DNA from: Macrostomum lignano
Lineage: Eukaryota
NCBI GenBank assembly: GCA_002269645.1
Contig: NIVC01001433.1
Coordinates: 124,001-188,000, forward strand
Direction: 5' to 3'
Length of the DNA: 64,000 bases
Shown here in pieces: positions 3,950 to 29,121 of this stretch (position 1 is the stretch's first letter; each line of letters opens with the position of its first letter). A program made the translations under genes and the position numbers. The notes beneath the pieces were generated by a model, which was not told the DNA's origin, ran no database searches, and saw only the letters and a list, made by a program, of their open reading frames with translations.

Positions 3950-4149
3950 TGTGGAGGTCACGCCACACGCGCGTGCGCGCTCCGGCAGCCACCCCAACCC
4001 CGGCCGGGAAGCCCGGCGCTATGTGCACGGTCGCTGTGCGTTGATTGGCTGCCCAGTGTACACCGCTGGCCTATATAACTTTAGACCTTTGTCTCGCGCG
4101 CCTCCACCCTGCTACTTCAAATAAACTTTACGTGGCTCAACTCGCCACA
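3950..4149 (+). mobile_element. 5' LTR of Ty3/Gypsy element (200 bp)
   Basis: TGTGG...CCACA termini, TATATAA near 4072, AATAAA near 4120, followed after 1 nt by TGGTGAGCCCGAC (PBS-like, 4151) and gag. Confidence 0.85.
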
Positions 4150-6265
4150 TTGGTGAGCCCGACTCTCAACCGCCTGTTTGAGAATAACTCCTCAGTATGT
4201 CAACTGAGTTTGCGGTGGCCCTCAAGCTGCCCACGTTCTGGGCCAGCCAGCCTCGCGCCTGGTTCATCCAGGCAGAGGCGCAATTCGTCCTCCGCAACAT
4301 CACGCAAGATGCTATCAAATACTTTCACCTCGTGGCTGCGCTGGACCAGCAGTCAGACGAGTGCCTGCTGGACGTGCTTGAGACACCGCCGGCTAAGAAC
4401 AAGTACGACGATCTCAAGGCCCACCTCCTTCGGCCTGACGCAGCAACAGCGTGCCAGCCGGCTGCTCAACCTGGCCGGCCTCGGTGACCGCCGCCCGTCC
4501 GAGCTCATGGACGAGATGCTGGCCCTGCTCGGCAACCACCGGCCCTGCATGCTCTTTGAGGAGCTTTTCCGCCAGCAGATGCCGGCCGACATTCGCATAG
4601 CATTCGTTTCCGCGGATTTCGCAGACCCGCGCGACGTTGCGCGACTCTGGGCGAGCCGGGAACAGCCCGTGGCCACCGCCACCCTGCCGCCAGAGCACCC
4701 GCCGGTAGTTGCTGCCACCGCCCGCCCCGCTCGCGCCAAGCCGCAGCAGCACCAGCCGAGGGAGGCCGACGGCCCCATCTGTTTCTTCCACAGGAAGTTC
4801 GGCGCCAAAGCCCGGCGTTGCGAGCCGCCCTGCCAGTTCTCGGAAAACGGGCCGGCCGGCCGTCAGTGAACGCTGAAAAGCTGGTCGACACCGGCGCTGA
4901 AGTGAGCATTTTTCCTGTCTCGGGGGCAGACGCCTGCTCGCACACACCCGGCCCGCCGCTTTTCGCGGCCAACGGCAGCCCAAACTGGACGTTCGGCAGC
5001 CGGACGCTAACGCCCGACCTCGGCGTCAAGACCTGCACCTGGCCGTTCATCCTTCGTTGATCGGCGCAGACTTCCTGCGGTACCACGGCCTCCTGGTGGA
5101 CATGCCAAACCGCCGTCTGCTCGACACTAGCTCGCTGTCCTGCTGCTCGGGTCCGGCCCGGCCCCGCAGCTTGCCGCCGCTGTCGCTGGGGACCCGTACA
5201 GCCAGCTGCTCGCGGAGTTCCCGACGCTGACAGAGCCGAGTTTCCAGAAAGCCCGGCCGCTCCACGGGGTCCAACATCATATTCCTACGACGGGCCCCCC
5301 GTCCACGCCCGGGCGCGCCGCCTGCCGCCTGACAAGCTGGTGGTGGCCAAGGAAGAATTCCGCAACCTGGAGCAGCTGGGCATCGTGCGGCGGTCCTGCA
5401 GCCCCTGGTCGTCGCCACTGCACATGGTGCCAAAGGCCTCCGGGGGTTGGCGGCCCTGTGGCGATTTCCGGCGACTCAACGACGCCACGGTGCCCGACCG
5501 CTACCCGGTGCCGCACATCTAGGACTTTTCTGCGCGGCTGTCCGGGTGCAACATTTTCTCCAAGATCGACCTGGTGCGGGGCTACCACCAGATCCCGGTT
5601 GCCGAGGCCGACATGGCCAAGACGGCCGTCATAACGCCATTCGGCCTGTTCGAGTTTCTCCGGATGCCATTCGGACTCAAAAACGCCGCCCAGGCCTTCC
5701 AACGGCTGATTGACACGGTCTGCCAGGGCCTGGACTTCGTGTTTGCCTATATCGACGACTTCCTAGTGGCGAGCAGCGGCCCTCAGCAGCATCTGGAGCA
5801 CCTGCGCACGTTGTTCCAGCGCCTGGCAGACAACGGCCTCCTCGTCAATCCAGCCAAGTGCCAGTTTGGCCGCAGTGAAATCGACTTTCTGGGCCACCGC
5901 ATCAACAGCCGGGGCGCCGTGCCGCTGCCAGACAAAGTCGAAGCCACCGCCCGATTCGCACCGCCCGCGACCGTCAAGGGCCTGCAAGAGTTCGCCGGCA
6001 TGGTGAACTTCTATCACCGGTTCGTGCCGCGGGCCGCCCAGTTGCTGCGCCACATCTACGGCGCCCTGGCCAGCAAGGACAAGATCGTTCAGTGGACACC
6101 GGAGCTGACGGACGCCTTCAACAGCACGAAGCAGGCCCTGGCTGACACCCGGAGCCCCAAAGGCGCTGACGGTCGACGCCTCGGACACCGCCATCGGGGC
6201 GGTTCTGGAGCAGCGTGTCGGCGAGGCCTGGCGGCCACTAGCTTTCTTCAGCCGCCAGGCTCGTG
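3950..6265 (+). mobile_element. Ty3/Gypsy LTR retrotransposon, degenerate and 3'-truncated (gag, protease, RT, partial RNase H; no integrase or 3' LTR)
   Basis: Gag KLPTFWASQPRAWFIQAEAQF and CFFHRKFGAKARRCEPPC; protease LVDTGA; [38 protein letters not shown]; RNase H TVDASDTAIGAVLEQ. Frameshifts, small deletions and a TAG at 5520. Confidence 0.95.
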
Positions 6266-6332
6266 TCACTCGTGAAATATCAGTTAAAAGCATCCGAGCG
6301 TCGTATATTAAAACACCGATTTGCACTGTAGC

Positions 6333-6566
6333 GGCGCTGTCGATATGTAAAATCAAATGGAGAGCTTAGAAATGACACTAGATGGAGCTAATGCACACAG
6401 CTGCAAAGATGACGCACACAGACTGGCCCGCTACTCTCAGCATCTCTAACTAGCACTGTCAATATATAGAATCAAATGGAAAGCTTAGAAATGACACTAG
6501 ATGGAGCTAATGCACACAGCTGCAAAGATGACGCACACAGACTGGCCCGCTACTCTCAGCACCTCT
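6333..6566. repeat. Two direct copies of a 119-bp unit
   Basis: ATCAAATGG at 6352 and 6471 with near-identical downstream sequence. Confidence 0.9.
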
Positions 6567-7368: not shown

Positions 7369-10300
7369 TTACTTAACAAGCATTTCAAACTCCTTCATTG
7401 AGTAGAAGTTGCCGAAGGGATAATACCAGGAAATACCGACGGCTTCCACTGACAGGTGAAAAGCTTCTGGGGGATTAAAGTACAGGCCGTTCGGGTTGGT
7501 CTGATGACACAGACCATACCACCAGCCTCCTTTGTATGTCAGACTACAGCTGCCATCTCCTGCATCGTTGTCAGAGTCGATGGTGCTGAACTGCATGCCA
7601 TTGTGGAAGGCCATGACGTCTCCCAGACTCGGGTGGCTGCCATGGAAACCGGAGACACTCAAACGGAACTTGTCGGCCTCGCTGGCCACGGAGAAGCTGG
7701 AGTAGTCGGCCCAGAACTCCGTGCCATTCCACAGCCTCATTCGCATGCGAAGTGCTCGACCAGACGGCCAGGTCAGAGAGTGCACAGCTCGCAGACCTGC
7801 AGTTGTCAAGCACAGCTCAATGCTGAGCAGCTCACAGCCACAGGAGGCCAGCGCTATCAAAAAGTGCATCAATACCGTCATGACCGCACTGCACTGCACT
7901 CACCGAGCCAGTGGTTCGTGTGGGCTCCCTCTCCGAAGCCGGCTGCGTACTCGGTCCAGTTGCGATAGAAGTCTGTCGAGTTGTCCACCCGACGCTGGAT
8001 GCTGATCCAGCAGTCGCTGAGTGACGTCACAAACACCTGCAGTGAGGCATTGAGAGCTGCGGTCAGGCAAGTGCTGTCAGTTACCTGGCTGTCAGGTGAG
8101 TCAGTGCACGCTTGCTACTCACCCTGATGCAGCACGGAGACTGGTGAGTGTGAGGCGTCAGTCTGCGACACACAGCGCCACTTCGGTTTGCTAGAATGCG
8201 AATGAGCTCAGCTGGGTGAGCAGCTTCCTCAGGTTTAAGGCATTGAGCATGAGTACTGATGTGCGATGCTGTGGCTGTACTGCTGCTCACACACTGCAGA
8301 CACTGCTCACACACTGCAGACACTGTTCACACACTGCAGACACTGCTCACACACTGCAGACACTGTTCACACACTGCAGTCACTGTTCACACACTGCAAA
8401 CACTGCTCACACACTGCAGACACTGCTCACACACTGCAGACACTGCTCACACACAGCAGACACTGCTCACACACTGCAGACACTGTTCACACACTGCAGA
8501 CACTGCTCACACACTGCAGACACTGTTCACACACTGCAGTCACTGTTCACACACTGCAGACACTGTTCACACACTGCAGACACTGTTCACACACTGCAGA
8601 CACTGTTCACACACTGCAGACACTGTTCACACACTGCAGACACTGTTCACACACTGCAGTCACTGTTCACACACTGCAAACACTGCTCACACACTGCAGA
8701 CACTGCTCACACAATGCAGACACTGTTCACACACTGCAGACACTGTTCACACATTGCAGACACTGCTCACACATTGCAGACACTGCTCACACACTGCAGA
8801 CACTGCTCACACACTGCAGACACTGTTCACACACTACAGACACTGCTCACACACTGCAGACACTGTAAGAGCCACTGCTGCTCACACTGCAAACTAACAC
8901 TGTGAGTGTTCACACTACAGTCACTGGTCACACACTGCAGACACTGCTCACACTGTAGAAAGTACTCATAGTCACACACTACATAAACTGAAAGAGCGAC
9001 TGCTCACACACTACAGTCACTGGTCACACACAGCAGACACTGCTCACACACAGCAGACACTGCTCACACACTGCAGATACTGGTCACAAATACAGTCACT
9101 GCTCACACACTACAGTCACTGGTCACACACTACAGTCACTGGTCACACACTGCAGACACTGCTCACACACTACAGTTACTGGTCACACACTACAGTCACT
9201 GCTCACACACTACAGTCACTGGTCACACACTACAGTCACTGGTCACACACTGCAGACACTGTTCACACACTGCAGACACTGGTCACACACTGCAGACACT
9301 GCTCACACACTACAGTCACTGGTCACACACTGCAGACACTGTTCACACACTGCAGACACTGCTCACACACTGCAGACACTGTTCACACACTACAGACACT
9401 GCTCACACACTGCAGACACTGTTCACACACTGCAGACACTTCACACACTGCAGACACTGTTCACACACTGCAGACACTGTTCACACACTGCAGACACTGC
9501 CCACACACTGCAGACACTGCTCACACACTGCAGACACTGTTCACACACTGCAGACACTGCTCACACACTGCAGACACTGCTCACACACTGCAGACACTGT
9601 TCACACACTACAGACACTGGTCACACAGAGCAGACACTGTTCACACACTGCAAACACTGCTAACACACTGCAGACACTGTGAGAGCTCACACACTACAGT
9701 CACTGGTCACACACTGCAGACACTGTTCACACACTGCAGACACTGCTCACACACTGCAGACACTGGTCACACACTGCAGACACTGCTCACACACTACAGT
9801 CACTGGTCACACACTACAGTCACTGGTCACACACTGCAGACACTGTTCACACACTACAGTCACTGTTCACATACTACAGTCACTGGTCACACACTACAGT
9901 CACTGGTCACACACTACAGTCACTGGTCGCACACTACAGTCACTGGTCACACACTACAGTCACTGGTCGCACACTACAGTCACTGGTCACACACCACAGT
10001 CACTGGTCGCACACTACAGTCACTGCTCACACACTACAGTCACTGGTCACAAATACAGTCACTGGTCACACACTGCAGACACTGGTCACACACTACAGAC
10101 ACTGTTCACACACTACAGTCACTGGTCACACACAGGTCTCGGCAACGCAATGCAGCCAGGACTCACTCACCCACGATGCACTGCGGCTGCTGTGCCCCAT
10201 CCCGAGGGATGAAGACAAGCAGCTGATGAGCGAGCAGGTGCTTGGCAGCCTGTGCAGCGCACTGCAGCACATCGCTGGCTTGCTTGATGGAGGAGAGAGC

Positions 10301-10411
10301 GAAGTGGCGGACTCGACCGCCCGACCAGCTGCTGCTGTGGACTTCGTGCAAGTCCAAAGCGCTGCCGGCGGCCACGGCTGAGATGAGCAGCAGGAGTTGA
10401 GCGAGTTGCAT
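7369..10411 (-). CDS. Secreted fibrinogen-related domain (FReD; ficolin/tenascin-like) protein, copy 1, 4 exons
   Basis: Exons 10411-10171, 8190-8123, 8036-7904, 7796-7369 with phase-consistent GT-AG sites; signal peptide MQLAQLLLLISAVAAG; FReD motifs IQRRVDNSTDFYRNWTEYAAGFG, HNGMQFSTIDSDND, GGWWY..CH.TNPNG. Confidence 0.92.
8282..10135. repeat. 20-bp minisatellite (CACTGCTCACACACTGCAGA) filling intron 1 of FReD copy 1
   Basis: Directly visible 20-bp periodicity; explains the THCRHCSH-type ORFs. Confidence 0.95.
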
Positions 10412-10569
10412 TTTTATGAAAATTCCAAGCGTTTCTGAGTCCACGTGAGTCGTGTCTGTCGCCACTGGAGCTGCCGTGACCACTGGCAATGGTACTTGAT
10501 AGCTATAAAATTCTTGCCGTAGTCACTGTGAGAGGCTGGGTGTTTTTGTTCATAAATTTTCCACCAAGT

Positions 10570-10900
10570 CATGGACTCTGGAAGTCAACTGGACTGGAAG
10601 CGAGCTGGCGAAAGTTAGTCAGCACTGCATCCAATGGCAGATGAGCAACCGACAGCTCAGCCGCAGCTATTTGCGCGGCGCATCTGAAGGCTGCGTACGG
10701 CTGTTCAGTCCAAGGACTGGGGGGTCGCCGCACACCCTCAATTACCCCAGCTAATGCTGGTAACCCATTTTACAGCTGGGTGAACTGAAGCAATGTAGAG
10801 TTAATTGTCTTGCTCAAGGACACAAATTGTTCCAGTGGGATCGGGAATCGAACCCCCGAGCTTTCAGCCGTGAGTCCGAGGCTCAATAGGCTACAGCTAG
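10570..10900 (-). mobile_element. tRNA-derived SINE with CORE-like central domain
   Basis: Minus-strand B box GGTTCGATTCCC near 10850 followed by GTCCTTGAGCAAGACA...CAGCTGTAAAATGGG, resembling conserved SINE core domains. Confidence 0.7.
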
Positions 10901-11439
10901 CCTGCAATTTATCAGAAATCCTTAATTATCAAAGCGAAATCTCCTTAGTAGTGAAAAAATTCAACGTGTACAATTTCGGTTCTCCAGTCCAGTTGATTTT
11001 AAGGATCCTGGGCTCTGTATGTTGATTTGCATTTGCTAAGCGAAAGTCAACAATTTCCTGGCTATATTGATTTCCTGTCTGAGAATTAGTGCCCAGTGGC
11101 CGCTAGTAGCCCCCCCCCATTGTTTTACAGAAGCTGTGATGTTGACACTCGGCTTCTATTGGCAGCAGCCTGCATGCAAACTGGAATTTTTTATGGTCCA
11201 GGCTGAGCACCTGGTAGCTTCTTTTCCCGTCAGCTGTTTATTTTATACTGAAGTTAAACATTGCACCGTCAGTGCTGGCTATGATTGGCGCTCAATGCGG
11301 ACTATTAGGCGTCTGATAAAGGACTACCTGTATGGGAAAATAGGCGCTTACTGAATAATCAGCGCTTACGGAAGCATCTGGGCTTACTAACGGTATTAAA
11401 GATTCGACGCTTGTAGAAAAATCGGAGCCTAATGAATAA

Positions 11440-11640
11440 TCGGGACTTGTTGGAGAGTCGGGCTTACTAAAGAATCGGTGCTTACTGAAGAATCAAGGCC
11501 TACTGAAGAACCAAGGCTAACTGAAGAATCAAGGCCTACTGAAGAATCGGTGCTTACTGAAGAATCAAGGCCTACTGAAGAATCAAGACTTACTGAAGAA
11601 TCAAGGCCTACTGAAGAATCGGTGCTTACTGAAGAATCAA
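11440..11640. repeat. 18-bp degenerate tandem repeat (TACTGAAGAATCAAGGCC / TACTGAAGAATCGGTGCT)
   Basis: Directly visible. Confidence 0.9.
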
Positions 11641-11849
11641 TAATATCGAGTCGATCCTCTTAAGACCTGGCGCAAATGAGTATAGGCTTACCGCAAGAAC
11701 TCAGCCGAGTCTCGGTTGACTTGGTCTGAAGAAAGTTCCTCGCTGACTTCCTCTTCTGAGCTCTTCTTCCCTCTGGAAGGTTCTCTGTTGTCTCTGTTGT
11801 TGCTCCGGTCCGCTTCGGACCACTTGTATTTAAGGGCGATTTCGCGAGA

Positions 11850-11995
11850 TATAAATAGCAACATGATTCATCTGTTTCGCTATAAAAAGTAATATGATTC
11901 ATTTTCTGGTTATAAATGGTAACATGACTCATTTCGTTTATAAATAGCAACATGAATCATATTTTCCGTATAAATAGTAACATGGTTCATATTTA
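11850..11995 (+). promoter_or_regulatory. Five ~30-bp units each with TATAAA(T/A) plus an ATGANTCAT palindrome (AP-1-like)
   Basis: TATAAA at 11850, 11881, 11911, 11939, 11969; ATGATTCAT twice, ATGACTCAT, ATGAATCAT, and one degenerate copy; regulatory role is inferred only. Confidence 0.4.
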
Positions 11996-12672
11996 AGGTT
12001 TTGGTGTGCAAATGTCCGCCAGTCTACTCAGTAGCAATCTATGAATAACCTTCACCTTAACAATTGTATGATTTTCTGTGGGAAGTAGAACACTCTACAG
12101 ATGTGCCTAACGCAACGGACTGCTTTGGTATCTAATCAGGTAATTCCAGCATGTAATAGCCACCCGATGATGGACGAGAATAATCAAAGGGGATTAGAAT
12201 AGAAAGGCATCGCAAGAGGCCAGACGAGGAATTTAGCAGTGAATTTCAGTTTCTGTTATTCCTAGAATCCTTCTCTGCAGAATTTTCTAAGGCTCAGAAA
12301 TTAGTCATTACTCAACGTTTCTTTTTTTAGACTTTGAATGCGTTTCCGTAATGAGGAAAATTCTTAAACTCTCTCACATCCAATCAAACTACTTCTCACG
12401 AGAATTCCAAGTCAGTAGGAGAAGCTGCTGACAGGGGCAGAGAAGCAATTAAATTGCCAGCTTGAAGTGAAGCCTTACTGGTAGGGTCTGGATTGTGGAG
12501 CTGGTGCTTATAAAGGAACCTCTTCACATCCATTGTTTTCAACCCTTCAATCGTGGATGCCAAACTCTTGCAAGGCTCCTAAAGACGTAGCCAACTATGA
12601 GAATGACGATTTGAAATAAAATCCCCTTCTCAAAGACAAGAACGATTTCGTTATCTACAGCGTCACCAAGGC

Positions 12673-13615
12673 ATGAGTTGCAGCATCCTAACTGGACTCG
12701 CTGTGGCGATGCTGCTGCCACTCCTGGTGCACTGCGGCAATGGAACCCTGCACAGCAGCATCTCGGTCGGCGGCTGCGTGGTGCCGCAGACTCCGCAGCA
12801 CTCGCTGGCGGCCTCGAGCGCCCGCATGTGCGCCTTCCTGTGCTCTCAGCTCCGTCGTCCCTGCATCGCCTGGAGCCACCGCGCAGGTGTCTGCAACATG
12901 TCGGACAGCCTCCAGACCGCCAGTCTGACGAACGACACCGACTGCCAGGCGTGGAGCGCCCTGCGCCAGCTCGGCCTCGTCGCCTTCTGGCCCATGAGCA
13001 ACGCCACTCGGACTCGCAATGCGGTCTCGAACAGCGGCCATCTCGACCTGCAGGAGAACATCCCGATGCAGTACACGGACAGCGCCGTCAACTTCACTGG
13101 TCAGTCGGGTGTGTCAGAGCGGTTCAACATTGACGAGTTGAATTCGGTGTGTCTCACCAGCCTCACCATGTCCGTGTGGGTCAAGGTCACCAATGCGTCG
13201 AGAGGTCCGATGCCTCTGCTGGATAGCATGACCCTGCCAGGAGGATACTTCACTCGACTGTGGCTTCATCCAAACAGTACGAGCCTCCACGTGGTGATTG
13301 AGTCGCCAATTTCTCACTGCACAGCCGACGAACCCACCGACACGGCCAGCGGTTGGACCCACTTTACCGCGGTATATGACAAGCAGACGCCGTCAGTGAA
13401 GATCTACTCGAACGGTACGGAGAAGGCCATCTCTGGTATACCGGCCACTCTGAACTCGTGCGCGGATTTCGGCACCACTGCTCAAATCGGCGGCTCGACT
13501 AGCGACTAGCGACGTGACGCACAACCGCGTGTTCCAGGGCTACATGAGATGCTTCAGCGTCTCACAGAGAGCCCTGAGCCAGGCTGAAGTTCGCCATTTA
13601 ATGAAGCTCTGTTGA
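12673..13615 (+). pseudogene. Secreted PAN/apple-like plus LamG/concanavalin-A-like lectin protein, copy A, frameshifted near the C-terminus
   Basis: Signal peptide; Cys pattern RMCAFLC..C.AWS...GVC; LVAFWPM, LTMSVWVK, GWTHFTAVYD, IYSNG. Tandem 7-bp duplication GACTAGC (13497-13510) gives a stop at 13509; removing it restores HNRVFQGYMRCF...KLC* ending at 13615. Confidence 0.85.
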
Positions 13616-15500
13616 GCAGGTTATGCCATCACAAACGGAGTACTCGGAGCTCATCCAATTCAAACAATTTCTAACTTTGGAACAATATTCGCCTAACCGA
13701 CTCAGAAAGATTTTTTAACTTTTAGTTAGTGCAGCAGTTCTTTTCAATATTTTCCGCCCTTTGGACGTCTAGTAAAGTGTAGCGTAAAAGTATATAGCGC
13801 TCTTCAGTAGTCTGTGTGACACATATTTATTCATGTTTCAAAGGCACTATGCGGATGCTGTTCTAAGAACAATAACTGTTCTTTTAATCTCTAAATCTAT
13901 GAAACGCTATACTGCTGAATTTTCTTTTGTAGTAAAGATCATTGTGGAATAAGTAACCAATATTTTTTCTTTAAAACTAATAACCTGAGCGAAACGCAGC
14001 ATATATCTGATTGTGTTTCAAGACTTGGCACTATTAAACAAAGGGAGACTAAATACAGTTGTTGGCTAACCTGGCCTTTCTATCAGAGTGAAGCATTCAA
14101 TTCTGGGGATGATTTTCTTTTCAAAGAACCTAAAGTGATTCTAGGCAAACCAAACACTGGTTGAGCAAAGGACACCAGCTGTGCCTCAATATTTGAAGTT
14201 TGCGCGGCTCCTCTTCTCCTAGCGACGAGGTAGACTTTAAATCAAAAACAGTCTTCGTAGCACATCTGTGGCGGTTTATTCTTCATCATCCTCGCGATCG
14301 GATGAACTGTCAATTCATTTCACTTTTAAGCCAGTAGCATAAACGCACGAGGACATGATATAATAGAATTCTTTTTTTCCAATCGAAACTGGTACGTTTA
14401 TGACATACTCAGGTTTGCCTTTACTGAACTTCAAAACTGTTGGTTATTTTCTAGTTTCCAAGAATCGGAAGATGAGTTCAGGCGATTCGGCAGTGAATAT
14501 GATAGATGGTGGATCGAGGCTTAATTAAGAGTGAAGTAGATGGTTAGTCAGAAGTGAATCTGACTGGATGAATCAGGGGGTGAATCGGTGGGTGAATAAT
14601 GGATAAATCAGGGGAAATAGCGGGTGAATCGAGGTGAATGGATGCGTGAATCGTAAGCGTTCATCATTGGGATAGAGACAAGATAAAATACTTTCTTACA
14701 CGCATGCCACTTTTAAGAAATGACCTCTGAAAGCCATTTTACCCAGAAAATTCTGCGAATTCAAGGAACTTTTAAAAGTAAGGGTGAAACCCCTTGTCGA
14801 CACAATGAGTCGCAGCAGGGCATGGTAGCTATAGCCACAGTCAAATCCTGAGTTCGTAGCTAGAATTACTAGAATTACTAGAATTACTAGTCGTAGCTAG
14901 AGCTAGAGTCTGCACTGCTGAGGATCTGCCACCTCAGTTTACATGCGTCAGCCGGCAGGGTTTTGCCGCGCGGCTTCTGTGGACTGTCGCATTGCTAATT
15001 AGAGCTGTCGGTTCCTCAGCATACCTGCGCGCAGAAATTCATGGGAGAGGAACACAGCTTGCTAGAAGCAATTTACAGGAGGCAAACCGGGAGAGAAGAA
15101 ATTCTGAATAAGTTATAAAGAGCCCAGCAAAAAAAGAACTCCGACAAAAAAATCATCAAAGCTTGCTTGTTAAGCTGAAAAATGCGGCAGCAGGAAATTC
15201 TGTCCTTGATTAAAATTGCAGCCACATTCAGACAATGGGCTTGAGCTCGCCTAACGACTCAATTGGGAGAGACTGTACTGCGAACAATGGAAATTTGCGT
15301 TTCCTCATTTTTCTCACAGCAGGGATTCATATTTAAGAAGGCTTCCTTAGCCAACGAGAGAAACTCTGAATGACAAGAGCCGAGGGAAAAGCATTAAAGT
15401 AAATAAGCTGCTGAGAAGCTCCAGTCTGCAGCTGAATTGCAGCTGTCAAAATCCGATTAAAAAGCAAGAACGAGTTCAGTATCTACAGTGTCACCAAGGC

Positions 15501-16436
15501 ATGAGTTGCAGCATCCTAACTGGACTCGCTGTGGCGATGCTGCTGCCACTCCTGGTGCACTGCGGCAATGGAACCCTGCACAGCAGCATCTCGCTCGGCG
15601 GCTGCGTGGTGCCGCAGACTCCGCAGCACTCGCTGACGGCCTCGAGCGCCCGCATGTGCGTCTTCCTGTGCTCTCAGCTCCGTCGTCCCTGCATCGCCTG
15701 GAGCCACCGCGCAGGCGTCTGCAACATGTCGGACAGCCTCCAGACCGCCAGTCTGACGAACGACACCGACTGCCAGTCGTGGAGCGCCCTGCGCCAGCTC
15801 GGCCTCGTCGCCTTCTGGCCCATGAGCAACGCCACTCGGACTCGCAATGCGGTCTCGAACAGCGGCCATCTCGACCTGCAGGAGAACATCCCGATGCAGT
15901 ACACGGACAGCGCCGTCAACTTCACTGGTCAGTCGGGTGTGTCAGAGAGGTTCAACATTGACGAGCTGACTTCGGTGTGTCTCACCAGCCTCACCATGTC
16001 AGTGTGGGTCAAGGTCACCAATTCGTCAAGGGGTTCGATGCCTCTGCTGGAGGGCCTCACAATGCCTACCTCAGACTACACTCGATTTTGGCTTTATCCC
16101 ACAGTTACAACCATACACTTCGTAGTTTTGTCCCCGGAGGCGGGACTCACATATCCCGGACCCACCGACACGGCCAGCGGTTGGACCCACATCGCCGCCG
16201 TGTACGACAAGCAGGCTCCGGAAATCAGGATCTACGTCAACGGAACTCAGAAAGCAACTAACGGTCCGGTAGCTGCTGTGACATCCTGTGCGAACTTCGG
16301 CAGCAGCGTGCAGATCGGAGCCGTCAGCCGCAGTGTCAGTCACAACCGCGTGTTCCAAGGCTTCATGAGATGCTTCGGAGTGTCAGAGAGAGCTCTGAGC
16401 GACTCTGAAGTTGCTTCTTTGTATGAGCTGTGCTAA
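15501..16436 (+). CDS. Secreted PAN/apple-like plus LamG/concanavalin-A-like lectin protein, copy B (311 aa, intronless)
   Basis: Intact ORF with signal peptide, PAN-like Cys pattern and LamG_3-type motifs WTHIAAVYD, IYVNG, FQGFMRCFGVSERALSDSEV. Confidence 0.9.
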   Translation: MSCSILTGLAVAMLLPLLVHCGNGTLHSSISLGGCVVPQTPQHSLTASSARMCVFLCSQLRRPCIAWSHRAGVCNMSDSLQTASLTNDTDCQSWSALRQLGLVAFWPMSNATRTRNAVSNSGHLDLQENIPMQYTDSAVNFTGQSGVSERFNIDELTSVCLTSLTMSVWVKVTNSSRGSMPLLEGLTMPTSDYTRFWLYPTVTTIHFVVLSPEAGLTYPGPTDTASGWTHIAAVYDKQAPEIRIYVNGTQKATNGPVAAVTSCANFGSSVQIGAVSRSVSHNRVFQGFMRCFGVSERALSDSEVASLYELC

Positions 16437-18234
16437 GTGTACAATCACCACATTTTTCTATTATGAGTATGGTTGATAGCGATGTGAACGAACTTTGAGC
16501 CATAACTTTGACGATTGACTGTTAACCAAGTTCCTGTGGCACCAAAAACGCACCAAATAACCCAATTTTAGAACTGGAAAATGAGAAAACTATACTAAAT
16601 CTCAACTAACTACTCGGGTATGAAACTATGAGCAACTGAGTATGCTTATAGGCTTACAAAACCGCTTATAATCAAATGCTTCTGTCGTGTTAAATAAATT
16701 CATAACTGAGACACTTTAAGACAATTTTCTTCGACGTCACTGCAAGTTGCAGCAGCCATTGTATTGGTGCAATTTCCAAGCTTTTCAGGCATAAAATAGA
16801 TGGGGGCGTCTGATTGGGAAAAGAATTTCCTGCAGGGCTAACAAAAAACACCTTTTCCAGTAAGGAAAGAGCTTTGCCAGGGAGTTGTTAACCTCGTTGC
16901 CATGCCAACCGCTCCACAAACTATAGCTGCTAGAGTGCTTATTGTTTGAGTCACTCAAGAAATTTCTCCCTAGTGAATTCATGCAGTGGCAGGGATTCTT
17001 ACAATGACTGCTTCAGCGCCTCTCCAAGGCGCACATGTCCCAACTCTTAAAAAATGCATAAGTTTTGAGCAGCCAGAAAGGGCGGAGTGGAGAATTAAAT
17101 TCTTTGGGTTCGGCGTGCAGCAGCTTGAAACAGGTACTTGTCTGAAGCAACAATGTGGAGGACTGCTTTTGCAGAAAGGAATTTTGCTTCAAGACTCGGC
17201 AGCACTCCCTGCAATTGCAATTTTGCTATTTTGTTTTAACACTTCAGATGCTTAAATAGTTCGTGTGACTGCGTTACTATATAGTAGTATAGTATGCTAT
17301 AGTAGTAAAAAACATTTAGGAAATAATAATCATAATATTTGATTACAGCTGCTTTATTGGACTCACGGCTCAGTTATCAGTTGAAACTCTTCACAATGAT
17401 ACATGTTCCAACTCTTCTTACATTTAATACCCTTCACCCGTGTTACCAAGAGGAAAACCAGTATCCCAGGGGCTGAGCCCCCTACTTAAAGTACCTTAAA
17501 GCATTTAGTAACGTTCAGCAACTTATCGAACTACTCAAAGGTACCAAAGAAGTGTCTTTCAGAATAACCTCCAGAGCAAAATGCGCAGGAGACAATGGTG
17601 ACTGAGACTTCAGACCAACATTTCATTGCGATTCATAAATTATGTTCAATTTTGAACACTTATCTGCGTTTCGAAAGCACGGATATGGACCATAAAAGCT
17701 CAGAGGTCTGTCTGCATGTTACGTAACTTTCAAAATATGCTAACCCGACTGTCGGTTGCTCTAAGGACTTTCTTAGCCGTTAACGGTGAGATAGACAGCT
17801 GAAACTGAATTAAAAGTTTACAGTACTAGGCATTGTTGAATTTAAGTGTCAATTATGGCACTGACAGGGTAATATTTTTCCTCTAGAGTTTATTAAAAAG
17901 CTTGAAAAAATAAGAGGGAGAAGTGTGTAGCTAGCAAAGCATCCAAATTATGATTGAACAATGGAAAAAGCTTATTGGGCACAGCTGTCTTTCACCTGCT
18001 AGTAACTGTTTGCATGCTGACACTCATGTATTTCGCCTCCATATAGCTGATGGCTTAGACACAATAAGAAATTCACTCAATTTAAAGAAATCCAACTGAA
18101 TTCTGTCCAATCCTCCAAACCACCTGCACCGGCTCTCAAATCTAGGGAGGGGTTGTGAAGGCAGTCATTAAAGCTGATAAACAGAGCTTACGCTTAAAAC
18201 AGATGTCACAGGTAGAGAAACATTGGTGAGGCTG

Positions 18235-20485
18235 ATGAAGACGTTCTCCAAGCTGCTGATTTTCCTGACCGCAGCGGCTGCGGCTTCGGCCATCGAGCTG
18301 AACGAAGTCCACAGCAGCAGCTGGTCGGGCGGTCGAGTCCGCCACTTCGCTCTCTCCTCCATCAAGCAAGCCAGCGATGTGCTGCAGTGCGCTGCACTGG
18401 CTGCCAAGCACCTGCTCGCTCACCAGCTGCTGGTCTTCATCCCTCGGGATGGGGCACAGCAGCCCCAGTGCATCGTGGGTGAGTGAGTCCTGGCTGCATT
18501 GCGTTGCCGAGACCTGTGTGTGACCAGTGACTGTAGTGTGTGAACAGTGTCTGCAGTGTGTGACCAGTGACTGTAGTGTGTGACCAGTGACTGTAGTGTG
18601 TGACCAGTGTCTGCAGTGTGTGACCAGTGTCTGCAGTGTGCGACCAGTGACTGTAGTGTGTGACCAGTAACTGTAGTGTGTGACCAGTGTCTGCAGTGTG
18701 CGACCAGTGACTGTAGTGTGTGAACAGTGTCTGCAGTGTGTGAACAGTGTCTGCAGTGTGTGAGCAGTGTCTGCAGTGTGTGAGCAGTGTTTGCAGTGTG
18801 TGAGCAGTGTCTGCTGTGTGTGACCAGTGTCTGTAGTGTGTGAACAGTGTCTGCAGTGTGTGAGTAGCGTCTGCAGTGTGTGAGCAGTGTCTGCAGTGTG
18901 TGGGCAGTGTCTGCAGTGTGTGAACAGTGTCTGCAGTGTGTGAACAGTGTCTGCAGTGTGTGAGCTCTCACAGTGTCTGCAGTGTGTGAGCAGTGTCTGC
19001 AGTGTGTGAGCTCTCACAGTGTCTGCAGTGTGTGAGCAGTGTTTGCAGTGTGTGAGCAGTGTCTGCTGTGTGTGACCAGTGTCTGTAGTGTGTGAACAGT
19101 GTCTGCAGTGTGTGAGAAGTGTCTGCAGTGTGTGAGCAGTGTCTGCAGTGTGTGAGTAGCGTCTGCAGTGTGTGAGCAGTGTCTGCAGTGTGTGAGCAGT
19201 GTCTGCAGTGTGTGAGCAGTGTCTGCAGTGTGTGAGTAGCGTCTGCAGTGTGTGAGCAGTGTCTGCAGTGTGTGGGCAGTGTCTGCAGTGTGTGAACAGT
19301 GTCTGCAGTGTGTGAGCAGTGTCTGCAGTGTGTGAGCTCTCACAGTGTCTGCAGTGTGTGAGCAGTGTCTGCAGTGTGTGAACAGTGTCTGTAGTGTGTG
19401 GACAGTGTCTGCAGTGTGTGAGCAGTGTCTGCAGTGTGTGAGCAGTGTCTGCAGTGTGAGCAGCAGTGGCTCTCACAGTGTCTGCAATGTGTGAGCAGTG
19501 ACTGCAGTGTGTGAGCAGTGTCTGCAGTGTGTGAGCAGTGTCTGCAGTGTGTGAGCAGCAGTGCAGCCACAGCTAGCATCTCACATCATTACTCATGCTC
19601 GATGCCTTAAACCTGATGAAGCTGCTCACCCAGCTGAGCTCATTCGCATTCCAGCAAACCGAAGTGGCGCTGTGTGTCGCAGACTGACGCCTCACACTCA
19701 CCAGTCTCCGTGCTGCATCAGGGTGAGTAGCAAGCGTGCACTGACTCACCTGACAGCCAGGTAACTGACAGCACTTGCCTGACCGCAGCTCTCAATGCCT
19801 CACTGCAGGTGTTTGTGACGTCACTCAGCGACTGCTGGATCAGCATCCAGCGTCGGGTGGACAACTCGACAGACTTCTATCGCAACTGGACCGAGTACGC
19901 AGCCGGCTTCGGAGAGGGAGCCCACACGAACCACTGGCTCGGTGAGTGCATTGCAGTGCGGTCATGACGGTATTGATGCACTTTTTGATAGCGCTGGCCT
20001 CCTGTGGCTGTGAGCTGCTCAGCATTGAGCTATGCTTGACAACTGCAGGTCTGCGAGCTGTGCACTCTCTGACCTGGCCGTCTGGTCGAGCACTTCGCAT
20101 GCGAATGAGGCTGTGGAATGGCACGGAGCTCTGGGCCGACTACTCCAGCTTCTCCGTGGCCAGCGAGGCCGACAAGTTCCGCATGAGCATCTCCGGGTTC
20201 TCCGCCAGCCACCCTGGCGTTGGAGACTGCATGGCCTTCCACAATGGCATGCAGTTCAGCACCATCGACTCGGACAACGACATTTCATCTGTCAGAAGCT
20301 GCAGCGTCACCTTTAAAGGAGGCTGGTGGTATAAAGATTGCCATCGCACAAACCCGAACGGTCTGCAGTACTTTAATCCCCCGGAAGCTCTTGCCACTCC
20401 TCAGTATGCTGTCGGGATCAACTGGTATTGGAGTTTCGATTACTACTATTCGATGAAACAGTTTGAGATGTTACTGAAAGGGTAG
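18235..20485 (+). CDS. Secreted FReD protein, copy 2, 4 exons (inverted paralog of copy 1)
   Basis: Exons 18235-18478, 19655-19722, 19809-19941, 20049-20485; same exon 2/3 sizes and phases as copy 1; FReD motifs intact. Confidence 0.92.
18510..19560. repeat. 20-bp minisatellite (reverse complement of 8282-10135) in intron 1 of FReD copy 2
   Basis: GTGTGTGAGCAGTGTCTGCA units. Confidence 0.95.
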
Positions 20486-22090: not shown

Positions 22091-22312
22091 ATTGACAGTC
22101 TGTAAGTCAAGTACTATAGTTAACAAGGTAGTACTTCCTTACTTGAACCAGTAGTGCCCTGTGCAAAAATAGGTTTTATTACATATTGTAGGGTAAATGC
22201 TAAATATACTCTTTTCTAACAGCCGATATAGTCAGTGAGTATTTCCAGCCCATATCCTGCCACAACTTTTACAGGTCATCTACAATACTTGGTGAAAAGC
22301 ATTTTTCAGTCC

Positions 22313-23074
22313 ATGAGCGAAGAGCCATTGTCGGAACAGTGCGCGTCGCAGCTTGAAGCGGCTCTGCACTACACCTCAGAGACTCTGTACGCCAGATTAG
22401 GCCCGCTAGCACGGTCCTGTCGCCAAGGTGACCAATACGAATGTATCAACGCGTGCGTCTTTTTGATATCAAGCGCAGCAAGCCAGAGGCATGTGAGTCG
22501 AGAAGCTCGTCTGGCCACTTTCAGGGAAGGCCGCTGGTCAGAGAAGAATTGCTGCCAATCGCAGGAGAGCATGGTAGAAGCCGGGTTCTACTATCTGGGA
22601 GAAGCAGACTATGTGAAGTGCTTCTTCTGCGATCTGGGCCTCAGAGACTGGAACCCGGCCGAAATAGCCGAGATGGAGCACGCCAATTTCAGCCCTCTCT
22701 GCTTCTTTCTCAAGGCTTCTCGCGGTCTGGACTGGCTTCGGAGTCGGTCGAACCGGCCGCAGAACTACCCGACCTCGTATCTGCGCCAGGACCACAACGG
22801 GCTGATGCGGCAGATCAAACAGGAGCTGGACAGTCCGTACGCCGTATTCGCCTGCGGCAGCGGGTTCAACGACACGAAAGTGATGCTGTGCATAGCGCGT
22901 CGGTATATTCGGCAGGGGGCCAAGATGACGCTGCAGGAGCTGATCACGGAGCTGCAGGCCGAATGGGACCGGGAGATGCTGGGGGGCGGCAACAGCTCGA
23001 AGTTCAGCGATGCAGGACCGAACTTTCCTGGCCAGTTCGATCTGGCTGCCACGCTGCGAAGCTTTCGGGTCTGA
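22313..23074 (+). CDS. BIR-domain (IAP family) protein with C-terminal UBA-like segment, no RING, intronless
   Basis: RLATF...AGFYYLGEADYVKCFFC-x16-H-x6-C is a canonical BIR; downstream SPYAVFACGSGFNDTKV...LQELITEL resembles the IAP UBA; ATG at 22313. Confidence 0.9.
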   Translation: MSEEPLSEQCASQLEAALHYTSETLYARLGPLARSCRQGDQYECINACVFLISSAASQRHVSREARLATFREGRWSEKNCCQSQESMVEAGFYYLGEADYVKCFFCDLGLRDWNPAEIAEMEHANFSPLCFFLKASRGLDWLRSRSNRPQNYPTSYLRQDHNGLMRQIKQELDSPYAVFACGSGFNDTKVMLCIARRYIRQGAKMTLQELITELQAEWDREMLGGGNSSKFSDAGPNFPGQFDLAATLRSFRV

Positions 23075-24683: not shown

Positions 24684-27600
24684 CTAACAATCCTCGTCCA
24701 AACGACTCATCACGCTGTCAATGTACTCTCCGATTGACACCACGGTGCCGCGTTTTCGAGACTCCTCAGCGGCGAACGCCACCAGATGTCCGTAGAGAGT
24801 GGAATCGTTGAGTTCGCGCTGCAGTTCAGCTAAGCTGCTGCCTGCAGTGTCACCACCTGCCTCAGCTGAGTCCTTGGCTTTGAGCAGGGCCCGAACAAAG
24901 GCCTGCAGAAAAATGACAATTAAAAAAAATGGTTTTAACGAGGCACTACCCGTTCTATACGCACAGAGAAGTAGCTTGTCATTAACAAGGTACTGCCACT
25001 TACCAGTATCTGCTAACCAAAGGTACTGCCTTATAGGAATAATACACAGAGTAATAAGGAACCGCATATGTCAGGAACTAAAAAAAGCATTCTCTAGTGA
25101 CGTCATTCAAAATAACAAAAAATCCGTAATCCTGTGCCTTACAGTACATTTTATATACAGAATCCCGTCTAAAATAGCTTCATCAATGTTCACAATGCCC
25201 CAATCCAATTCATTTCATTTTGCTGACACCCCAGTAACACAAATCACACAGGGTGTACAGCGTCCCGGACATTCCCATCGTCAGGCATGTACTACGAGAC
25301 CCAATCTGGAATTAAAAGTCAATCAGAATTTGTCTAGTGAAAACGTGAAAACGCCAGAAACGTCTTTTCGATACATATCGGAACATGTCACAATTTCGGG
25401 CAGATTTTGTATTAAAAATGGTATATAATATTATTTTCGATACATATCGGAATAAATCAAGATTTTACACGCCGATTTTGTACTGAACGACTGCGTAATT
25501 TTGATACACATCGCTCTAAATCTTGATAGCAGAAGACGGCTAAATATGCACTTTTCGATACATATCGGGACATTTCGCAATGTATCGGTGCAATTAGAAC
25601 TCGTTTTGAAAGACTAAATATGATATTATTTTCGATACATGTCGTGTTATAACACAACTCAATCAAACAGTCAAAATGCACTTTTCGATACATATCGGTA
25701 GACAAATTTAACCTCACCTGAGCCAGGAAGAAATCGGCCGAACCGTGGCCTCGCATCCGACCGCTACCAGCTGGTGGGGCTTCCTGATTGTCGCCCTCGG
25801 GGCCCAGGCCCACAGGTACGTGCATGTGGTCCATGCTGGCAAATTCGTACATGGTCAGAGCCGTGTCTCCGTAGGAGGCGCCGTTCCAGCGCAGTTCACC
25901 GCGGGTCCCATAGAAAACGCTGGAACGAACGCAGACCGCCTCGGTGAAGGCCATCATGGTGAGGCTGGCGGTGGCCCCATCATCAAATTCCATGTTTACT
26001 ACCTGCGGGATTAGCAGGTTTGAGATAAAAGAACTTTATTTTAATGTAAATCTTGATGTTTGTTAAAGCTGGAAATACTGTAGCATCTGAATATCATCAC
26101 AATTAACACCTGAATATCCTCACAATCAACACCTGAATATCCTCACAATTAACACCTGAATATCCTCACAATCAACACCTGAATATCCTCACAATCAACA
26201 CCTGAATATCCTCACAATCAATACCTGAATATCCTCACAATTAACACCTGAATATCCTCACAATCAACACCTGAATATCCTCACAATTAACACCTGAATA
26301 TCCTCACAATCAACACCTGAATATCCTCACAATCAACACCTGAATATCCTCACAATCAATACCTGAATATCCTCACAATTAACACCTGAATATCCTCACA
26401 ATCAACACCTGAATATCCTCACAATCAACACCTGAATATCCTCACAATTAACACCTGAATATCCTCACAATTAACACCTGAATATCCTCACAATCAACAC
26501 CTGAATATCCTCACAATCAACACCTGAATATCCTCACAATCAACACCTGAATATCCTCACAATCAACACCTGAATATCCTCACAATCAACACCTGAATAT
26601 CCTCACAATCAACACCTGAATATCCTCACAATTAACACCTGAATATCCTCACAATCAACACCTGAATATCCTCACAATCAATACCTGAATATCCTCACAA
26701 TCAATACCTGAATATCATCACAATCAACACCTGAATATCCTCACAATCAACACCTGAATATCCTCACAATCAATACCTGAATATCCTCACAATCAATACC
26801 TGAATATCCTCACAATCAATACCTGAATATCCTCACAATCAATACCTGAATATCCTCACAATCAATACCTAAATATCATCACAATCAACACCTGAATATC
26901 CTCACAATCAATACCTGAATATCCTCACAATCAACACCTGAATATCCTCACAATCAACACCTGAATATCCTCACAATCAACACCTGAATATCCTCACAAT
27001 CAACACCTGAATATTCTCACAATCAACACCTGAATATCATCACAATCAACACCTGAATATCATCACAATCAACACCTGAATATCCTCACAATCAACACCT
27101 GAATACCATCACAATCAACACCTGAATATCCTCACAATCAATACCTAAATATCATCACAATCAACACCTGAATATCCTCACAATCAACACCTGAATATCC
27201 TCACAATCAACACCTGAATATCCTCACAATCAACACCTGAATATCCTCACAATTAACACCTGAATATCCTCACAATTAACACCTGAATATCCTCACAATC
27301 AACACCTGAATATCCTCACAATCAACACCTGAATATCCTCACAATCAACACCTGAATATCCTCACAATCAACACCTGAATATCCTCACAATCAACACCTG
27401 AATATCCTCACAATCAACACCTGAATATCCTCACAATTAACACCTGAATATCCTCACAATCAACACCTGAATATCCTCACAATCAATACCTGAATATCCT
27501 CACAATCAATACCTGGGTATCATCACAATCAACACCTGAATATCCTCACAATCAACACCTGAATATCCTCACAATCAACACCTGAATATCCTCACAATCA

Positions 27601-29121
27601 ATACCTGAATATTCTCACAATCAATACCTGAATATCCTCACAATCAATACCTGAATATCCTCACAATCAATACCTAAATATCATCACAATCAACACCTGA
27701 ATATCCTCACAATCAACACCTGAATATCCTCACAATCAACACCTGAATATCCTCACAATCAACACCTGAATATTCTCACAATCAACACCTGAATATCATC
27801 ACAATCAACACCTGAATATCATCACAATCAACACCTGAATATCCTCACAATCAACACCTGAATACCATCACAATCAACACCTGAATATCCTCACAATCAA
27901 TACCTGAATATCCTCACAATCAACACCTGAATATCATCACAATCAACACCTGAATACCATCACAATCAACACCTGAATATCATCACAATCAACACCTGAA
28001 TACCATCACAATTAACACCTGAATACCATCACAATCAACACCTGAATACCATACGCTGCCAACCCGCTCACCTGATGATCGCAAACGTCATTGTCGCAGT
28101 TGTAAACGCGGCGGCCGTACGGCCCAGTCTTAACGGCCTCCTCAACCAGTTGCTGATATTTCGCATGGTCTCCATTGCACGCTTCCCGGTCGACGAAAGC
28201 TGCCGGGCTCCAGACTCCGGGGAAAATGTAGGCCTGGATTCGAGGCAGGGGTTTCCGGGTGGGCGAAGCATGAGAGACAGGTGAGACAGGGATAGTTAAG
28301 GGAAAACGGTTAGTACAGGGAATAGGATCGGGACAATGCAGGGGATAGGATAGGAAGAGTGCAGGGAATAGAATAGGGAGAATGCAGGGAATAGGATCGG
28401 GACAATGCAGGGGATAGGATAGGAAGAGTGCAGGGAATAGAATAGGGAGAATGCAGGGAATAGGATAGGAAGAATGCAGGGAATAGAATAGGAAGAATGC
28501 AGGGAACAGGATAGGAAGAATGCAGGGAACAGGATAGGGAGGATGCAGGGAACAGGATAGGGAGAATGCAGGGAACAGGATAGGGAGGATGCAGGGAACA
28601 AGATAGGGAGGATGCAGGGAACAGGATAGGGAGGATGCAGGGAACAGGATAGGGAGGATGCAGGGAACAGGATAGAGACAATGCAGGGAACGGATAGGGA
28701 GGATGCAGGGAACAGAATAGGGAAAATGCATTGAAGTGTCCATCGCAGCCACCTTAACGGCAGAGTAGGGGCAATCTTTCTCCACGCTGCAATCAACACA
28801 TCGCTCGGCGGCCCCCTCTGGCTTCTCTTCCGGCCGGAAGTGCACCAGGCTGCCGAAGCTGGACACCCTGGAGCAGCGGGACGGCATCCAGTAGCAGATC
28901 AGGTCCACATCGTGGCAGCACTTCGTCAGCAGGGAGAACGCGCTGCCAGCCTCGTTGCGCCAGTTGCCTCTGACGTAGGAGTGCGCGAAATGAGCGTAAC
29001 CAACTGGCTCGGTGTGCTGCACGTGGCACAGGCGGCCCAGCTGGCCAGACCTGCGGTGGGGGCGGCGGATGTCTGTCTGTCTGTGTGTCTGTGTCTGTCT
29101 GTCTGTGTCTGTGTCTGTCTG

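Follow-up and report, generated by a model that had tools for sequence, protein, structure and literature searches.

The DNA analysed here, a 64-kb stretch of the Macrostomum lignano genome (hereafter the window), carries within about 13 kb (7369-20485) two divergently oriented genes encoding a fibrinogen-related domain (FReD) that enclose a tandem pair of genes encoding a Laminin_G_3 (LamG) domain. In both pairs, a nearly identical tract gives way abruptly to a strongly diverged 3′ coding end, and this cluster of secreted, lectin-like genes probably consists of old paralogs whose middle has recently been overwritten by gene conversion. Divergence is mosaic in both families, the homogenised tracts take in introns as well as silent sites, and other members of the families repeat the design. 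This is a new example of a known process, the partial concerted evolution of a secreted lectin family, in a species for which it has no prior description. Proteins of the window are 94-100% identical to M. lignano entries in UniRef, indicating that the window is DNA of this species or of an extremely close one.

Identity steps in the FReD and LamG pairs

All gene models were built by hand from the window sequence. The FReD gene on the minus strand, FReD(-), occupies 7369-10411 with exons at 10411-10171, 8190-8123, 8036-7904 and 7796-7369 and encodes 289 amino acids (aa), and its counterpart on the plus strand, FReD(+), occupies 18235-20485 with exons at 18235-18478, 19655-19722, 19809-19941 and 20049-20485 and encodes 293 aa. 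All splice sites in the two genes are GT-AG and the intron phases are consistent; an alternative in-frame acceptor for exon 2, adopted by some database models, lies 21 nt upstream, at 8211 in FReD(-) and 19634 in FReD(+). Both proteins are 97-100% identical to UniRef M. lignano entries, with exons 3-4 identical to P0005 for FReD(-) and to P0200 for FReD(+), and both have a hydrophobic signal peptide, an N-terminal segment of about 60 aa that is predicted to be helical, and the fibrinogen-related domain. The LamG genes, LamG-A (12673-13614) and LamG-B (15501-16436), each consist of a single exon on the plus strand and share one layout, a signal peptide followed by a Cys-rich PAN-like segment and the Laminin_G_3 domain. 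LamG-B is intact, encodes 311 aa and is 94% identical to P0001, a UniRef M. lignano 'LamGL domain-containing protein'.

An earlier note on this DNA, made from the sequence alone, had described a symmetric locus of four secreted genes in the order FReD(-), LamG-A(+), LamG-B(+), FReD(+). The order, strands and families hold, but the reading frame of LamG-A is disrupted. A 7-bp tandem duplication (TAGCGAC x2, 13500-13513) introduces an in-frame TAG at 13507-13509 together with a frameshift, so that the gene as assembled is truncated by 33 aa, and deletion of one 7-bp unit yields a 311-aa open reading frame (ORF) colinear with LamG-B. The lesion appears to be young (or an allele, or an assembly error), since the last 33 codons stay open in the shifted frame to 13614, and LamG-A as assembled would represent a recent pseudogene, a null allele or an error of the assembly rather than an intact fourth secreted gene. 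The symmetry lies in the gene order and does not extend to the sequence, as no inverted repeat of at least 100 nt was found in the window outside the FReD genes; the FReD constant tracts themselves form inverted repeats of 0.7-2 kb.

Comparison of the FReD pair from one end to the other revealed a near-identical block set between unrelated sequences. The first 300 nt compared, made up of upstream DNA and the signal-peptide region, are 48% identical, which is the random level. Identity then rises to 97.2% in exon 1 past the signal peptide, stays at 100% and 93.5% in the two flanks of intron 1, at 100% in exon 2, intron 2 and exon 3, at 98.1% in intron 3 and at 99.2% in the first 122 nt of exon 4, and drops to 73.6% in the remainder of exon 4 up to the stop codon and to 43%, again the random level, in the 3′ flank. 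The homogenised tract thus spans 18301-20170 on the plus strand (partner 10348-7675 on the minus strand) and takes in exon 1 past the signal peptide, introns 1-3, exons 2-3 and 122 nt of exon 4. It includes a 20-bp minisatellite in intron 1, for which Tandem Repeats Finder (TRF) reports about 93 copies in FReD(-) (8283-10133) and about 52 copies in FReD(+) (18516-19558), and both ends of the FReD(-) array match the FReD(+) copy. The variable 3′ ends lie at 20171-20485 in FReD(+) and 7369-7674 on the minus strand in FReD(-), the former being 73.6% identical in nucleotides and 70% in amino acids to 7674-7372.

The LamG pair follows the same course. Its homogenised tract (12637-13190, partner 15465-16018, both on the plus strand) is identical at 541 of 554 positions (97.7%) and contains 36 nt of 5′ untranslated region (UTR), the signal peptide, the PAN-like segment, a linker and about the first 17 residues of the LamG domain. 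The variable 3′ part that follows (13191-13614 in LamG-A, 16019-16436 in LamG-B) encodes most of the LamG jelly-roll and is 67.1% identical in nucleotides, and the upstream DNA and the 3′ flank are each 45% identical. The near-identity followed by an abrupt drop that the earlier note had reported for both families is therefore confirmed by sliding and piecewise identity (97-100% to 73.6% for FReD, 97.7% to 67.1% for LamG). Its description of the genes as constant at the 5′ end and variable at the 3′ end fits both pairs as far as the 3′ end is concerned; the constant part of the FReD pair is internal, because the promoters, 5′UTRs and signal peptides of these two genes are unrelated.

Maximum chi-square analysis placed the breakpoints at codon 191 (FReD) and codon 175 (LamG), with 0 of 2000 permutations reaching the observed value, and this holds for all sites as well as for third positions alone. 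Third positions differ at 3 of 169 codons inside the FReD tract vs 39 of 98 outside it, and at 2 of 175 inside the LamG tract vs 59 of 136 outside. Pairwise Nei-Gojobori estimates of synonymous (dS) and nonsynonymous (dN) divergence show the same step, with dS 0.025 and dN 0.008 in the FReD constant part vs dS 1.15 and dN 0.23 in the variable part, and dS 0.033 and dN 0.013 in the LamG constant part vs dS 0.83 and dN 0.34 in the variable part. The codons of the FReD signal peptide are the most diverged (dS 2.6, dN 0.49). GC content at third codon positions is higher inside the tracts (0.74-0.85 vs 0.62-0.68), which fits GC-biased conversion and is weak evidence on its own.

The earlier note had also proposed that the binding surfaces diversify. 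Read as a claim of positive selection, this did not hold up, as dN/dS in the variable parts is 0.20 for FReD and 0.41 for LamG, and the sliding ratio of nonsynonymous to synonymous differences (pN/pS) runs from 0.26 to 0.61 in FReD and from 0.33 to 1.01 in LamG. No dN/dS clearly above 1 was found in the variable parts by pairwise comparison or in windows of 20 codons, using one pair per family, the highest of these windows being at 1.01. On these rates, the variable ends look old and constrained rather than fast-evolving.

Origin of the homogenised tracts

An abrupt change in divergence that includes silent sites and introns and lies between unrelated flanks is the pattern by which interlocus conversion is recognised, and it is seen in this cluster. 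The proposal that a shared scaffold is homogenised by gene conversion is supported accordingly, with silent sites and introns near-identical inside the tracts, dS of about 1 outside them and unalignable flanks. Each pair would go back to an old duplication, such that promoters, FReD signal peptides, 3′ coding ends and 3′ flanks are by now saturated or unalignable, and the central 0.55-0.85 kb, plus the FReD intronic minisatellite, would have been overwritten recently by interlocus (ectopic) gene conversion between the paralogs. The outcome would be a constant N-terminal scaffold joined to differing C-terminal binding modules. The boundary may persist because selection acts against any conversion of the binding module, or because the module is by now too diverged to recombine.

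Two other causes were rejected. Constraint on the protein cannot explain the constant part, because replacement sites are no more uniform there than silent sites and introns. Alternative 3′ exons of a single gene were dismissed since every copy owns a full exon set.

The window supplies DNA for two copies per family, and the other M. lignano paralogs were compared as database proteins. FReD(+), FReD(-), P0002, P0004 and P0008 share an identical constant part (…VFVTSLSDCWISIQRR…SEADKFR) that is followed by five different ends. The boundaries between constant and variable parts are ragged and patchy, with P0002 tracking FReD(+) for 17 residues further and P0008 tracking FReD(-), and the variable part of P0202 is a mosaic that opens like FReD(-) and continues like FReD(+). 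Among the LamG proteins, P0001 follows LamG-A to about residue 201 and LamG-B thereafter. The gene models of P0001, P0002 and P0202 are possibly chimeric, and each of these protein-level mosaics alone could be a chimera of annotation or assembly; as a set, they are not easily explained away. A second FReD subfamily (P0009, P0010, P0013, P0014, P0016 and P0017) has an invariant stretch of 97 aa followed by at least five different ends, with the break at the position equivalent to that in the FReD pair of the window. The LamG units in P0051 and P0052 have only the central 85 or so residues in common with LamG-A and LamG-B, and their Cys-rich segment has diverged. To judge from these protein sequences, in which at least five further FReD paralogs, the second FReD subfamily and additional LamG units display it, the constant-plus-variable design appears to be a habit of the family and not a peculiarity of the window cluster. 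It is not a feature of FReD genes in every tandem array, as a comparator contig (ctg6990 of ENA ERZ25068685, 5.5 Mb, eukaryote-like) carries at 9800-19700 an array of canonical FReD genes in which identity between copies is an even 82-87% along some 0.9-1 kb, without a step between constant and variable parts.

Identical tracts could also arise as artefacts, if copies were collapsed or wrongly joined during assembly, or polished across paralogs, in a genome that is rich in repeats and a hidden polyploid. The window is indeed dense in minisatellites (39 TRF rows), and several database models (P0001, P0012, P0051 and P0201) look like chimeras. Against this, the tracts are imperfectly identical, with differences scattered at 1-6%, the minisatellite arrays differ in length (52 vs 93 copies), both combinations of constant and variable parts recur in database proteins (P0005 and P0200), and the same design is found in at least 10 other family members as well as in the second subfamily, so we consider an artefact very unlikely. 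We give hardly any weight to a further account, in which both pairs arose by recent duplication and their 3′ ends then changed rapidly, driven by targeted mutation or by strong positive selection on the model of conopeptides. It would accommodate a sharp boundary inside an exon and a diverged part that corresponds to the binding module. It is contradicted by 5′ and 3′ flanks and FReD signal peptides that have diverged to the random level, by synonymous divergence of about 1 and pN/pS of mostly 0.3-0.6 in the variable parts, and by the existence of mosaic intermediates; a variable part with dS near 1 next to unalignable flanks cannot be put down to fast adaptive change in a young duplicate.

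Several points weigh against recent conversion between old lectin paralogs, the reading we prefer. The DNA comparison covers two copies per family, and between two sequences recurrent conversion would look no different from a single partial duplication or crossover per pair. The remaining paralogs are proteins from imperfect database models, which include fusions, intron read-through and one antisense ORF, several being fused or carrying translated introns, and they are possibly not independent of the assembly from which the window comes. In addition, the lectin activity of the LamG proteins is an assumption, no lectin activity being known for this Laminin_G_3 family.

Gene conversion of this kind has close parallels in human RHD/RHCE and in MHC and KIR genes, where paralogs are likewise uniform along most of the gene, introns included, a functionally distinct segment remains strongly diverged, breakpoints are sharp and boundaries are patchy. 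What differs here is that the pattern occurs in parallel in two unrelated families within one 13-kb cluster and in many dispersed paralogs. Conopeptides and cathelicidins resemble the window genes in being secreted families with a constant N-terminal and a variable, functional C-terminal part, but in those families dN/dS exceeds 1 and the signal is the most conserved part, whereas in the window dN/dS stays under 1 and conservation is lowest in the FReD signal peptides.

Encoded proteins and possible function

The two FReD proteins match Pfam Fibrinogen_C (PF00147) at E 3.9e-49 for FReD(+) and 4.8e-52 for FReD(-), and this is the sole significant Pfam match on the full proteins (INTAP is listed at E 0.34). 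In the AlphaFold model of FReD(+), residues 105-293 have a predicted local distance difference test score (pLDDT) of 88-98, and the top Foldseek matches of the model are the recognition domains of L- and M-ficolin (E 7e-23, root-mean-square deviation 1.3 A over 181 columns, TM score 0.75-0.81 on the target); the best match by sequence in the PDB is ficolin-1 (E 3e-36). Exon 1 encodes a segment predicted, at low confidence, to be a long helix, and the exon 2 segment is unmodelled. The canonical A subdomain is degenerate, with pLDDT below 50 for residues 69-100 and a Pfam match that starts at profile position 22. The FReD proteins keep the DxDxD motif and the Cys pair of the FReD fold that they share with M- and L-ficolin, tachylectin-5A and FIBCD1, but they differ from these ficolins and FReD-only lectins in having neither a collagen-like stalk nor a transmembrane segment, with the N-terminal segment of about 60 aa in their place. 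Residues 1-100 contain no Gly-X-Y run, no Collagen family was matched in Pfam, and no immunoglobulin superfamily (IgSF) domain was found in the Pfam scan, and without a collagen or IgSF domain the proteins are neither ficolins nor fibrinogen-related proteins (FREPs) in the strict sense.

The variable part of the FReD proteins comprises the end of subdomain B, the whole P subdomain, which is the ligand-binding one in ficolins, and the C-terminal strand. It coincides with the putative binding surface, as the earlier note had supposed, and the pocket residues within it differ between paralogs. The N-acetylglucosamine pocket of M-ficolin is formed by F274, D282, C283, H284, Y300, A301 and Y312 (PMC3088710). 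FReD(+) keeps all seven of these residues, but FReD(-) keeps three of the seven (it reads Y, L, C, H, E, A, N, with the changes F274Y, D282L, Y300E and Y312N); P0002 keeps four and P0008 only the Cys, so that altered pockets are found in FReD(-) and in other paralogs of the family. Across the five types of variable end, the mean number of residue types per column is 2.86 in the pocket (seven columns only) vs 1.86 in the rest of the variable part. From these differences it is reasonable to infer that ligand specificities differ between FReD paralogs. The proteins would be Ca-dependent glycan binders, FReD(+) with a canonical S1 pocket for acetyl groups and FReD(-) with a pocket that is predicted to be altered.

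The LamG proteins are less well characterised by their matches. Laminin_G_3 (PF13385) is found above the cut-off of 27.6 bits in both LamG-B (61.8 bits, E 1.1e-16) and LamG-A (37.7 bits). For the Cys-rich N-terminal segment, PAN_1 and PAN_4 are the sole Pfam families matched, at 12-13 bits (cut-offs 21-27; E 0.09-0.3) and in two diverged paralogs, and a profile search of this segment against PDB sequences gave no match at E up to 10. Of the label 'PAN-LamG' used before, the LamG half stands, and the PAN half rests on matches below threshold (13 bits vs a cut-off of 21). The AlphaFold model of LamG-B, based on an alignment of six sequences, has a pLDDT of 30, too low to judge either a PAN or a LamG fold. 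The Pentaxin profile gave no match in Pfam scans of the LamG proteins at E up to 0.1. A scaffold module common to the N-terminal segments of the FReD and LamG proteins was considered and rejected, as hhalign gave a probability of 0.2% and the segments are not homologous. In a representative library, the best 150 matches to LamG-B, besides three M. lignano proteins, start at E 4e-24, and the eight of these that were checked by name are all bacterial or metagenomic, one from Actinokineospora, one from a Zixibacteria metagenome-assembled genome and six metagenome proteins. The nearest relatives of the LamG domain outside Macrostomum are bacterial LamG-domain proteins with 24-36% identity. Together with the lack of introns, such relatives would be compatible with an old horizontal origin of the LamG genes, and mere database bias is possible as well.

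Two roles were weighed for the cluster. FReDs serve as recognition molecules in many invertebrates, and an innate immune cassette in which diversified FReD and LamG heads recognise microbes is possible, though we find it doubtful. The ficolin-like fold, the complete predicted acetyl-binding pocket of FReD(+) and the greater variation of pocket residues among paralogs (2.86 vs 1.86) point toward it. They are set against dN/dS of 0.2-0.4 with no window clearly above 1, the lack of any oligomerisation or effector domain (no collagen, no IgSF) and one gene of the putative cassette, LamG-A, that is broken. Nor was FReD-based immunity of flatworms found described in the literature, where searches on fibrinogen, ficolin and gene conversion yielded no main-text description of a FReD family in Macrostomum or flatworms. 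An invertebrate parallel, the FREPs of Biomphalaria glabrata, is likewise a multigene family of FReD proteins, diversified by point mutation and gene conversion, whose paralogs become mosaics by exchanging sequence, but FREPs combine IgSF with FReD, and the window FReDs have no IgSF. Diversification of FREPs concerns the N-terminal IgSF1 region, and somatic variation has been reported for them; in the window FReDs, variation falls in the C-terminal P subdomain of germline paralogs, and the converted part is the constant one.

The proteins may instead be products of secretory glands, most plausibly seminal-fluid proteins from the prostate, an explanation that we favour tentatively and to which we give somewhat less than an even chance. 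Seminal-fluid proteins are typically multi-copy and lineage-specific. Of the 76 M. lignano transcripts that are limited to the prostate, respond plastically to social conditions and represent putative seminal-fluid proteins (Weber et al. 2018, PMC5977470 Table S1), nine are of FReD type (RNA815_9549.1-.6, 11128.1, 14220 and 50917). These map to multi-gene clusters, e.g. Mlig005727.g1-g6, and sub-numbered 'isoforms' with sequence in common that map to one region are what would be expected from a constant-plus-variable family in a de novo transcriptome. The seminal-fluid candidates of the species are dominated by carbohydrate-binding modules (WSC, FReD), and a single transcript can map to as many as 14 near-identical genes (PMC5977470 Table S1; PMC6953679 Table S1). 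The prostate-limited transcripts Mlig-pro7, Mlig-pro8 and Mlig-pro13 resemble the window FReDs in species, domain family, secretion and occurrence as multi-copy 'isoform' clusters, but their RNA interference (RNAi) primers have no match in the window at up to five mismatches, and the window genes are therefore not Mlig-pro7, 8 or 13. The peptides encoded by these primers (NGNYWM, ADENYK) belong to another FReD subfamily; the primer comparison covers these three of the nine FReD-type transcripts. In a rough split, a secretory or reproductive-gland (seminal-fluid) role takes the largest share, short of half, defence takes a smaller one of under a third and other roles take the rest. A role in reproductive glands is at least as likely as an immune one, and the constant-plus-variable pattern by itself reveals no new kind of immune system.

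If conversion of old paralogs were true genome-wide, these families would provide a clean natural case of scaffold homogenisation with distinct ligand-binding modules, in parallel in unrelated families, and in a model flatworm open to RNAi, transgenesis and in situ hybridisation. The pattern also matters for seminal-fluid screens already published, given that de novo 'isoforms' and RNAi or in situ probes placed on the constant tract match many paralogs at once, and the probes of those studies probably target several paralogs simultaneously. A more far-reaching picture, which taken as a whole we regard as rather improbable, is that M. lignano may keep germline 'constant-variable' lectin repertoires (the two FReD subfamilies plus the LamG family) for the recognition of partners or microbes. 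Conversion would keep the scaffold uniform and selection would preserve a panel of distinct binding heads, and recombination between the FReD tracts would invert the 8-kb LamG segment, thereby swapping promoters and signal peptides between FReD heads.

Other features of the window

Minisatellites are packed throughout the window, with 39 TRF rows scoring 200 or more, whose periods range over 12-150 bp (e.g. 26087-28048, 42470-43120, 49691-50587 and 55304-56286), and the 20-bp array in the FReD introns is thus not unusual for this genome. Between FReD(-) and LamG-A, an 18/72-bp minisatellite at 11461-11640 encodes a repeat ORF of the TEESRPTEE type. Antisense ORFs of 117 aa lie over the GC-rich constant part of both LamG genes (12688-13041 and 15516-15869, minus strand), and the translation of the antisense LamG ORF sits inside UniRef P0051, evidently through mis-annotation.

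Part of a retroelement lies about 1 kb past the 3′ end of FReD(-), where a GC-rich block (4000-6400) contains a fragment of reverse transcriptase on the plus strand (RVT_1, 5574-6275, E 3.9e-24). UniRef P0012 fuses the antisense of this RVT_1 element with FReD(-) and with an ORF at 11660-11953 on the minus strand, and the same local order is therefore seen in another annotation. Upstream of FReD(-), at about 10830-10900 on the minus strand, there is a motif resembling a tRNA T-arm (GGTTCGATTCC), which may be the remnant of a tRNA-derived short interspersed nuclear element; an ARAGORN scan called no tRNA, the motif near 10850 included. On the other side of the cluster, about 1.7 kb downstream of FReD(+), an ORF on the plus strand (22235-23074) matches the BIR (inhibitor-of-apoptosis) domain at E 3e-17.

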